Below are positions 13,168 through 15,236 of a stretch of DNA of 64,000 nt, piece after piece; within the stretch, counting starts at the first letter, position 1, and each line of letters opens with the position of its first letter. Location: sequence record MZ475892.1; one strand, 5' to 3'. The translations under genes and the position numbers were made by a program. The notes under the pieces are model-generated. The model saw only the letters and a program-made list of their open reading frames with translations. It had not been told where the DNA came from and did no database searches.

Positions 13168-13800
13168 TTATGGCCATGTGGTGCCTTGATCTTTAGTAGG
13201 GTCCACCCAGAGCGTACCTGCGGCTACAGCTCCCGGCTGGGTAGCGCTAACGATAATTGCAAGACGACCGGAAGGACCTGCAGGACCAGTTGGGCCAGTA
13301 GGACCAGTACCACCAGTAGAGCCAGTAGGACCAGTACCACCGCGAGGGCCAGTAGGTCCAGTCGGTCCCATAGGCCCTTCACGACCTTCTCTGCCCGTAG
13401 GCCCAACATTACCGTCACGGCCATCACGACCGTCCGGGCCTGGTATGCCTTGCTCACCATCAGGGCCCACAGGGCCTGTACAGCCTGGACCGCCCGTTGC
13501 ACCATCACGACCATCACGACCATCTTTTCCGTCTGCACCTGTTTCACCTTTCTGACCTGTACGACCTGCTGGAATATCAGACGCAGTTGGGAAACCTGAG
13601 ACTTTGAGACTACTGCCGTTAGCAAAGCGCAGAGTTAACACGCCCGCAGTAGCGTCATACGAGGAATCTGACGTGACTTCTGATGGAGCTTCGGACTCAG
13701 CGCTGTTAACGACAAGTGTGCCGCCAGATGCTCGGACAGGTGTTGCAACAGAGCTTACGCCCGCAGCGATTAAACTTGTTTTTACCTTTATCAAACTCAT
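13168..13800 (-). CDS. Collagen-like fibre protein 3
   Basis: 34 G-X-Y triplets (about 13261-13566), GPT-rich; ends AAGTLWVDP... Confidence 0.85.
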
Positions 13801-15236
13801 TACGTCTTCTCCGCCTGAGCAGTCATATCCGTGTTATGAGCCAGAACATCACCAACGAAATAGCAGTCGAAAGGTTCAACGTCTATGTCTACGGTATTAA
13901 CGAGTTGGTCTATACGACGACATTCGTATACAGACACAGGACCTTTGCGCCCTCTGACTTGCATTCCTTGCTTAACTTCACGAGCAGGAACATAGCGCCA
14001 TTGCTTATCATCATAGATCAGCACAGGATGTTCGTGCGTAAACTTCTGTCCATTAATGACGAAGTAGTGATCTTCCTGACCATACTTGAGTGCGCGCACA
14101 GCAGCATAGACATTCTTACCTTTCAGACTTGGTGAGGACCATTTACGGAACTCTTTAGGCTGATTGGAGAACGATGCAAGCATATCGCCTACAGACAAAC
14201 GTTCAACAGGCACAGAGCCAGCGATTGTATGCACAGTAGAGCCGAACACGATACAGCCAGATGTTTTACTCACAGGGTTACGTGCCACTACGGTCAAAGC
14301 AGATTTCACAGTGACTGTAGGACGAGACGGTTGCCCCATGTCTGTTACTAAACAACTGATGGTGCCTCTGATAGTACGGTCAGCACCGAGACCAAGACGC
14401 AGATAGAAGTTAACTATGCATGTGTTAGTCTCTATGGCGTCAAGGTTAACGCCCTCAGTTGTTGTGATTGTCCACTTGTACTTGTATGGACCCACACCGC
14501 CACGCGCATTGACAGGCAGATAAGCAAGCGAGGTGAATACGTCAGACCCTTGTACTGTGCGCGTGCCTACCATGTACAGACTAGACACAGAAGCAACAAG
14601 TGGGCTGATAGTAGGAAGAGGAGGTGCTGGCGATACGTTAGCAGTCGGGTACAGCCACACGAACACGTTAGATGCAGTGGGTTGCACATTAGACAGCACA
14701 GCAGTTTCGATAGGTGCAGGACCTGTAGGACCCGTTGCACCTGCGATACAGCTTGGACCGTCATTGCCTCGTGGGCCGAGTATGCCAGTAGGACCCGTTG
14801 GACCGATTGGCCCTGTAGGTCCGTCTTTACCGTCAGGACCCGTGTCACCGTCAGGGCCAGTAGCGCCATCACGGCCAGGCTCACCCGCAGTGCCATTAAG
14901 ACCTCTAGCACCAGGGAGACCACCACAGCCGTCAGCACCAGTAGAGCCATCACGACCGTCACGACCGTCACGACCAGCAGCGCCTGGCGCACCTCTCTTA
15001 CCTTGCTTACCTGAACCAAACATTGCACTCGTAGGCAGGCCGGGGATATTAACTAAATCCCCATTCTGTTTGATGAGTACGAGCACGCCGTTCTTACTGT
15101 CAAACTTTACGCTTGCGATCTGTGTCGTTGTCAACACATCGGAGGATTCGAATTGAATACCACCAGCAACAGCAACAACGGATTTACCTTCATCGTTGCC
15201 TGTTGTCTCGATTTGCGAAAGTTTTAAGTCTGTCAT
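13800..15236 (-). CDS. Collagen-like fibre protein 4 with Ig-like domain and C-terminal Hint domain
   Basis: About 33 triplets (14715-15011), a [10 protein letters not shown] Ig-like domain, then C...TxxH...HN/T. Confidence 0.85.
13833..14255 (-). other. Hint (mini-intein/BIL-like) domain, 141 aa
   Basis: Starts CIVFGS (Cys1), block B FTHEHP, ends [10 protein letters not shown] followed by Thr; no endonuclease insert. Confidence 0.8.

Follow-up and report, generated by a model that had tools for sequence, protein, structure and literature searches.

A collagen-like fibre protein with a C-terminal BIL-type Hint domain

The 64,000-nucleotide stretch of sequence record MZ475892.1 analysed here (the window) encodes a 478-residue collagen-like fibre protein (13800..15236, from the open reading frame [ORF] list; this gene and all other window features given below with coordinates lie on the minus strand) that ends in a HINT domain followed by a tail of only 10 residues. 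By both profile and structure, the nearest relatives of this domain are bacterial intein-like (BIL) domains and not mobile inteins, and sequence comparison identifies it as a resident accessory module of the BIL type rather than a mobile intein. On balance, we favour the reading that the domain would excise itself and join the C-terminal glycine of the fibre to the tail, a chemistry that we infer, like its biological role, from the sequence features set out below. The presence of the domain is not new, given that the entry for the orthologue in the GenBank record of phage Y3 reads "putative phage tail protein, contains intein domain" and that precomputed Pfam PT-HINT and Hint_2 matches exist for some homologues. 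Our search of the literature found no paper on the function of the domain, on Hints at phage fibre ends, or on the lysine rule for the tails described below; the matches for Hint domain together with tail fibre dealt with terminase and ribonucleotide reductase inteins.

The domain spans Cys328 to Asn468 (13833..14255; 141 residues, 16.1 kDa), as delimited by fold, profile and invariant residues. Its block A nucleophile, Cys328 (14253..14255, in ...SKTSG-CIVFGS), aligns to residue 1 of inteins and BIL domains and is referred to as Cys1. Block B reads T400-H-E-H403 (TxxH; 14028..14039) and is invariant in 19 homologues, and block G consists of the penultimate His467 and the terminal Asn468 (HN; 13833..13838, in ...VLAHN), which are invariant in three alignments. 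A DIDVEP.D block is also present. The tail (13803..13832, with the stop codon at 13800-13802) carries Thr469 at position +1, Asp470 at +2 and Lys477 as its penultimate residue, the pattern seen in tails across the family. The 141 residues hold no endonuclease insert, and no other Hint was found in the 64-kb window.

To place the domain among known folds, we used an AlphaFold2 model of the 478-residue protein built on the 19 homologues, in which the predicted local distance difference test (pLDDT) score is 85-92 across residues 328-468. The VIA comparison matched exactly model range 328..468 to HINT structures, with Z scores of 17.8 for Hedgehog 1at0, 17.6 for the Mtu RecA intein, 17.5 for the BIL domain 2lwy and 17.0 for BUBL BIL2, at root mean square deviations of 1.4-1.9 Å over 123-133 residues; the model thus assigns the HINT fold with high confidence. 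Foldseek returned 2lwy as the best match (E 3.8e-7, TM 0.80, probability 1.00), followed by BUBL BIL2. The same relationship emerged from the sequences, where a profile of 12 relatives searched against the PDB hit 2lwy at E 8.5e-14, Tetrahymena BUBL BIL2 at ~1e-9 and the best intein at 3.9e-8, and where even the single-sequence search put 2lwy first (E 0.015). Pfam family models alone stay below threshold for the window protein: Hint_2 scores about 18-21 bits, below its cut-off of 28.4, and PT-HINT (PF07591) aligns end to end at 16.7 bits, below its cut-off of 27.7 (27.0 bits for the closest homologue, P0002), while no Hint or intein model of NCBIfam matches the domain and Pfam S74 gives no match to the protein. 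The original prediction from the DNA alone, an intact Hint at the tip of a collagen fibre with Cys1, THEH, His-Asn, a +1 Thr and a 10-residue C-extein, was therefore borne out by the fold (Z 17-18) and by the full catalytic set, with every element found in the ORF translation exactly where it had been placed. Its label of "mini-intein", however, was wrong, as profile and Foldseek searches both put BIL domains closest.

Catalytic residues are conserved under purifying selection

In the 19 homologues, at 45-77% identity, residues G327, C328, T400, H403, H467 and N468 are all invariant, and the Gly at -1, Cys1, TxxH and HN are also invariant in 58 distant homologues, down to ~30% identity. Between Erwinia and Dickeya phages the Hint is ~70% identical, and within nine phages it is 99-100% identical. 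Its ratio of nonsynonymous to synonymous substitution rates is 0.02-0.16, similar to that of the Ig and collagen parts of the protein, and on these sequence comparisons the Hint is maintained by purifying selection. The Hint-bearing gene is, moreover, syntenic in jumbo phages down to ~30% identity (contigs L013, L014 and L017).

The segment that precedes Cys1, a variable linker of residues 322-327 (PVSKTS-G; 14256..14273), is the least conserved of the protein (mean pairwise identity 0.42) and nonetheless ends in the invariant Gly327 at position -1. In the Erwinia clade this linker is variable and rich in Ser/Thr, with a single terminal Gly; in distant relatives it consists of 4-6 consecutive Gly (GGGGG|C; L013:9672-9692, L014:9018-9038, L015, L016 and L017).

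The +1 residue varies, and a Hint-less orthologue also lacks the tail

The +1 Thr of the original prediction is present in the window protein but turned out to be clade-specific: Thr or Ser occupies this position in the window protein and the Erwinia/Dickeya clade, whereas relatives have Ala, Val, Met, Leu or Lys. Specifically, the orthologue of Yersinia phage fHe-Yen9-02 reads HN-VDLVSKAEKN (+1 Val), the 55% identical P0026 reads HN-ADLVSKAEKN (+1 Ala), and in Afa-NA1 the residues after HN are MDDSGYETKRKY (+1 Met). Syntenic orthologues on metagenomic contigs of 311 kb (L013) and 329 kb (L014) read HN-AENALVHK and HN-LDAGGPVIKH (+1 Ala and Leu), a 484-kb uncultured phage reads HN-KH, and Lys is found at +1 in LR756508 and L003.

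The original prediction had also proposed comparing homologues with and without Hint, and this comparison proved informative. The 19 Hint-bearing homologues keep the catalytic set; gp096 of Dickeya phage JA11, which lies in the same gene order, has 324 residues and ends ...ITARNPK, aligned to ...VVARNPV of the window protein. It stops directly after the Ig domain and has neither Hint nor tail, nor any tail resembling TD..AEK. Therefore, the C-extein belongs to the Hint module and not to the fibre, no host protein would be restored by splicing, and the domain is a resident accessory rather than an intein that interrupts a host protein. An empty intein allele is expected to have contiguous exteins; JA11 gp096 does not, and a canonical intein was rejected on this ground. 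The JA11 sequence further shows that the Hint module is dispensable for making this type of virion.

Short lysine-bearing tails recur across the family

To survey the wider family, we searched residues 321-478 against 1.84 billion representatives and obtained 271 matches at E <= 1e-3; the following counts refer to the 141 best matches in which the terminal Asn is aligned. HN is found in 140 of the 141, Cys1 is Cys wherever it is aligned, the T and H of TxxH occur in nearly all, and the -1 position is Gly in 57 of the 99 relatives with Cys1 aligned. Most of these proteins (99/141) end no more than 20 residues after HN, the majority of the tails being 4-10 residues long. Few of these 99 short tails have a nucleophile at +1, where Ser or Thr occurs in only 11; the counts at this position include A 22, K 17, V 11, S 9, L 8, N 8 and T 2. 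Asp or Glu is found at +2 in 35/96. What the short tails do share is lysine: 97 of the 99 contain it, and in 56 it occupies the last or penultimate position. As a control, C-termini of matched length were drawn 2000 times from 83 phage proteins, giving 37.5 +/- 4.6 tails with Lys and a maximum of 54. The frequency of Lys is 14% in the tails vs 4% over the whole of the same proteins. The tail of the window protein, which has Asp at +2 and Lys as its penultimate residue, fits the family pattern.

Pfam PT-HINT matches 28 of 58 scanned relatives, and 12 of the 58 host proteins are collagen-like fibres; others bear Phage_tail_fib, Gp53-like_C, Phage-tail_3, Ig_J, fn3, Ig or Calx-beta domains, and the named family members are all "hypothetical protein". 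The genomic contexts include three more jumbo-phage fibre modules (L013, L014 and L017), a siphovirus-like tail-tip protein after an NlpC/P60 gene, and a P2-like baseplate block on the 56-kb contig L016, where a fibre with Peptidase_S74 (6541-7971) adjoins a 362-residue Hint protein (8001-9089). The latter has a C-terminal Hint and the tail ADQKD, so that adjacent fibre genes each encode a self-processing module, the two being unrelated. On the 329-kb jumbo phage contig, a structural protein of more than 1300 residues with Calx-beta domains (L014:14632-17527), encoded a few genes downstream of the fibre, has a faint PT-HINT match, so that in some relatives further virion proteins may also make use of a Hint. 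A further variant is found in P0028, P0063, P0098, P0107, P0124 and P0126, tandem poly-Hint proteins whose 2-4 Hints are separated only by Lys and 1-4 Gly (...HN-KGGGG-CFL...); several have N-termini resembling signal peptides and C-terminal regions rich in Gly/Ser. If each of these Hints splices, the exteins would be just K-G(n) peptides.

Tail codons overlap the Shine-Dalgarno site of the next gene

In the window, the tail codons have a second role. The GGAG Shine-Dalgarno sequence of the downstream 210-residue protein gene (13809..13812) lies inside the codons for Ala475-Glu476, 8-11 nucleotides before the ATG of that gene, which overlaps the stop codon of the fibre gene as TAATG. In all nine phages compared, Ala-Glu-Lys (AEK) is encoded by GCG GAG AAR, conserved at synonymous sites too, and the neighbouring codons vary. 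Since these invariant codons form the GGAG of the next gene, we rejected the argument that AEK conservation proves the peptide functional. The Shine-Dalgarno site of Afa-NA1 and of L013 lies in the spacer, and both lack AEK. We also rejected the converse, namely that the tail Lys is a mere by-product of the ribosome-binding site, as Lys is kept in L013 and Afa-NA1 (L002), where the site is in the spacer, as well as in two contigs without a gene directly downstream: L016, where a terminator and then a convergent gene come after the tail, and L003, where the tail adjoins a 70-nucleotide spacer.

A proposed model for excision of the Hint and ligation of the tail

The full catalytic set makes self-processing, as originally predicted, a sensible reading, with the chemistry itself extrapolated from related domains. 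N-to-S acyl shift and Asn cyclisation are established intein and BIL chemistry (PMC8616854, PMC7664689). In the window protein, an N-to-S acyl shift at Cys328 would convert the Gly327-Cys328 bond into a thioester, and cyclisation of Asn468 would cut the Hint off the 10-residue tail. Cleavage of this Hint-tail bond is suggested because Asn and tail are both kept, which would otherwise be senseless. The thioester would then be resolved by the tail itself, in the Erwinia/Dickeya clade via Thr469, in the manner of a class-1 intein, and in relatives without a +1 nucleophile by an amine, which may be that of the near-universal tail Lys (Lys477 in the window protein) or the alpha-amine set free by the cut. 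The tail is our candidate for the acceptor because the kept Asn and tail are hard to explain under simple hydrolysis. The expected products would be a 16.1-kDa Hint and fibre residues 1-327 capped by the tail (337 residues, 33,973 Da), or a fibre of 32,896 Da if the thioester were hydrolysed. The corresponding calculated masses are 50,032 Da for the precursor, 16,077 Da for the Hint (~17 Da lower with a terminal succinimide) and 17,154 Da for the Hint with its tail. Before its excision, the Hint would probably serve as a removable pro-domain during folding or assembly, a role suggested only by analogy with the unrelated S74 module.

Published work on BIL domains offers parallels to both routes. 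BIL2 is reported to join a C-terminus to the epsilon-amine of Lys in an isopeptide bond (PMC8616854), and one mutation reportedly suffices to turn BIL domains into efficient splicers (PMC7664689); the window protein naturally has a +1 Thr. It is tempting to speculate, albeit tentatively, that the Hint hands the Gly thioester to the Lys of a stub of 1-20 residues, in a BUBL-like isopeptide splicing that would leave a branched cap and would represent a widespread, as yet undescribed form of fibre maturation. Alternatively, the stub Lys may stand in for, or compete with, a Lys on another virion or host protein.

Several points weigh against ligation of the tail. The products of BIL domains are described as mostly cleaved rather than spliced (PMC7664689), and the JA11 fibre has no tail, so a ligated tail cannot be essential to fibre function. 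The lysine statistic was computed on related sequences (50%-identity representatives) against a control of only 83 phage proteins, and the codon pattern indicates that tail conservation in this clade is partly that of a ribosome-binding site and not at the protein level. In the model, the tail has a pLDDT of 35 and is disordered, giving no structural support for its reaching the active site. The role as pro-domain or chaperone, finally, would be pure analogy.

Alternative explanations

Some of these points would suit cleavage at the N-terminal junction only, in which the thioester is hydrolysed, the fibre ends at Gly327, and Hint and tail (17.2 kDa) are discarded as a self-removing pro-domain or chaperone, like S74, a B-type BIL or the first step of Hedgehog processing. 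BIL domains are reported to give mainly cleavage products (PMC7664689), the resulting fibre would match the JA11 protein, which naturally has no Hint and ends after the Ig domain, the +1 nucleophile is not conserved among relatives, the conservation of AEK is accounted for by the Shine-Dalgarno site, and in L016 an S74-bearing fibre adjoins the Hint-bearing one. We nevertheless consider this outcome unlikely, as a discarded domain needs neither the invariant His-Asn nor the short Lys tail (97/99), and both are left unexplained. The thioester could instead be attacked in trans by an external nucleophile, such as a Lys of a virion protein (for example, a neighbouring fibre or the sheath), a small molecule or a group on the host surface, which would covalently attach the fibre tip in a manner comparable to Hedgehog cholesteroylation or BUBL conjugation. 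The Gly at -1 and Cys1 would give a reactive thioester, the second-best match, BUBL BIL2, conjugates its N-extein to Lys of other proteins (PMC8616854), and this phage group has unexplained "hairs" of unknown proteins (PMC6143709). We hold such a transfer to be improbable: there is no partner candidate so far, only 10 residues follow the Hint in place of an extension resembling a sterol-recognition region, HN and the tail Lys conserved in cis suggest an acceptor within the same molecule, and the virion of JA11 is of the same type although this phage lacks the module.

That the Hint is simply retained, as a non-catalytic distal knob with a structural or receptor-binding role, would agree with its being as conserved as the Ig domain and with the RefSeq and PHROG labels, which say just "virion structural protein". 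However, the residues that remain invariant at ~30% identity are exactly the catalytic ones while surface positions vary, a tip used for binding should differ from host to host whereas the Hint shows 99-100% identity among nine phages, and JA11 does without it, all of which leaves little room for this explanation. Least probable by far, in our view, is a selfish mini-intein near the 3' end of the gene that persists only by clean splicing. The window protein does have the full class-1 residue set, including the +1 Thr, but a homing endonuclease is absent, the closest relatives are BILs, the domain occupies the same site in orthologues down to ~30% identity, +1 is non-nucleophilic in most relatives, and the Hint-less allele lacks the C-extein as well. 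Moreover, a single stop codon could remove a C-terminal Hint, and yet purifying selection holds it in place.

Overall, the original interpretation is partly supported. Its suggestion that the fibre end is attached to a short peptide is the outcome best favoured by comparison, through the family-wide HN and Lys tail, although the conservation of the tail is partly that of a ribosome-binding site; the ideas of a trimer chaperone and of transfer to a virion protein or a small molecule have no direct support.

Comparison with known Hint and fibre-processing systems

With the A-type BIL of Clostridium thermocellum (2lwy), the domain shares Cys1, TxxH, the C-terminal His-Asn, a length of ~140 residues and the lack of an endonuclease; its host, too, is a variable surface or structural protein and not a conserved enzyme, and it is not tied to homing. 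A-type BIL domains are described as having no nucleophilic residue at +1 (PMC7664689). Most relatives of the window domain have a non-nucleophilic +1 residue, and the window protein itself has a +1 Thr. The window domain also differs in its position at the extreme C-terminus, its short Lys stub and its phage-fibre host. BUBL BIL2 (6tmm/6y75) resembles it in having an N-extein that ends in Gly and in the Lys isopeptide chemistry (PMC8616854) that the Lys-tail rule suggests; it is, in contrast, eukaryotic, has ubiquitin-like flanks, and uses an acceptor Lys that belongs to a folded domain or to other proteins rather than to a stub of 1-20 residues. Class-1 mini-inteins (gp41-1, Npu DnaE/DnaB and Mtu RecA) share the fold (Z 16-17.6) and, with the window protein, Cys1, TxxH, HN and the +1 Thr. 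The window domain, however, interrupts no conserved host protein, its +1 nucleophile is not conserved, and its sequence affinity to them is weaker than to BILs.

Hedgehog/Hog (1at0), the best VIA match (Z 17.8), has the same Gly-Cys junction and C-terminal position in the protein, and we count as a further likeness that its thioester is resolved by a nucleophile from outside the protein backbone. It lacks the terminal His-Asn and carries a sterol-recognition extension, where the window domain has HN and 10 residues. Pretoxin-HINT (PF07591) is the Pfam family matched by most relatives and the one that aligns end to end to the window domain at 16.7 bits, but it releases a downstream toxin domain, whereas the window Hint is followed by just the 10-residue tail. 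Peptidase_S74, known from endosialidase and T5 pb1, likewise lies at the C-terminus of phage fibres, which are trimeric and often collagen-like, and cleaves itself off once they have folded (PMC7824862; PMC4690869). Its fold and chemistry are unrelated (a Ser-Lys dyad vs a Cys thioester and Asn cyclisation), and the analogy is functional only.

The fibre gene and its neighbourhood

The 3 kb around the domain are 100% identical to Erwinia phage pEa_SNUABM_34 (MZ475892, 264 kb), 96.6-98.7% identical to eight sister phages of the genus Snuvirus, and ~74% identical to Alexandra and other Alexandravirus phages. These phages are members of the Y3/AD1/JA11/Yoloswag lineage, a group of jumbo myoviruses called "hairy", in which the proteins that form the hairs are unknown (PMC6143709). 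By synteny, the 478-residue protein is the orthologue of Y3_110, AD1_108, Alexandra_114 and MPK74_gp117; its RefSeq and PHROG labels go no further than "virion structural protein", and phrog_38766 matches residues 1-478/478.

The protein starts with an N-terminal domain (residues 1-74; 15015..15236) that forms three short strands in the model and is common to two shorter collagen paralogues encoded downstream, and the phrog_8745 and phrog_38766 matches of all three proteins begin at their N-termini. It is followed by a collagen Gly-X-Y repeat (residues ~75-175; 14712..15014; Pfam Collagen PF01391, E 1e-13), in which every third Gly is invariant in the 19 homologues. Residues 207-321 (14274..14618) adopt an Ig/PKD-like beta-sandwich, with pLDDT 74-90 and VIA Z scores of 8.3-9.4 to PKD, PapD-like, Big_2 and cadherin domains, and probably constitute the distal domain of the mature fibre.

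The gene block comprises a ~1500-residue tail protein, a 779-residue protein, the Hint-bearing protein, the two collagen paralogues and a 673-residue protein. The 779-residue protein (15233..17572), part of the same fibre/baseplate module, has a weak N-terminal Phage_tail_fib match, and its orthologues of ~784-790 residues precede the Hint-bearing gene in L013, L014 and L017. Both downstream paralogues, of 210 residues (13168..13800) and 163 residues (12667..13158), are collagen-like and lack a Hint according to the ORF list, Pfam and PHROG. Together with the 478-residue protein they have in common, besides the N-domain, a W..P motif after the collagen; the 478- and 210-residue genes are translationally coupled (TAATG), and the order of the trio is kept across all relatives, including 300-kb metagenomic phages.

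The 673-residue protein (10634-12655) has no Pfam match and only a PHROG of unknown function. Its shorter homologue in Afa-NA1 (L002:6619-7845, 408 residues) is annotated "putative large intein domain protein", a label that seems unfounded. 'Alcaligenes phage Afa-NA1' itself (L002, PV550095, 78 kb), which carries a jumbo-phage fibre module, and 'Salmonella phage Sen-NF' (PV359490, 108 kb) are named for unrelated hosts. Their scores were equal both when the fibre Hint served as query (34.0%, E 2e-22) and when the Ig domain did (31.6%, E 6e-14). Judging from these matches, the two look like the same or near-identical sequence and are possibly partial assemblies of one jumbo phage.

Implications

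The only well-studied self-cleaving C-terminal fibre module is the S74 chaperone. A second, unrelated route of fibre maturation based on a thioester would, if true, call for a different way of predicting and engineering the ends of mature fibres, which matters for swaps of receptor-binding proteins in biocontrol phages of Erwinia and Dickeya. The Lys stub provides a testable rule on how BIL domains resolve the thioester without a +1 nucleophile, and the G-C...HN-K logic would also account for the K-G(1-4) spacers of the poly-Hint proteins if isopeptide splicing is true. The compact domain (141 residues) may lend itself to natural C-terminal ligation or cleavage tags. For the jumbo-phage lineage itself, the 478-residue gene is a defined candidate for the "hairs", with mature masses that can be checked.

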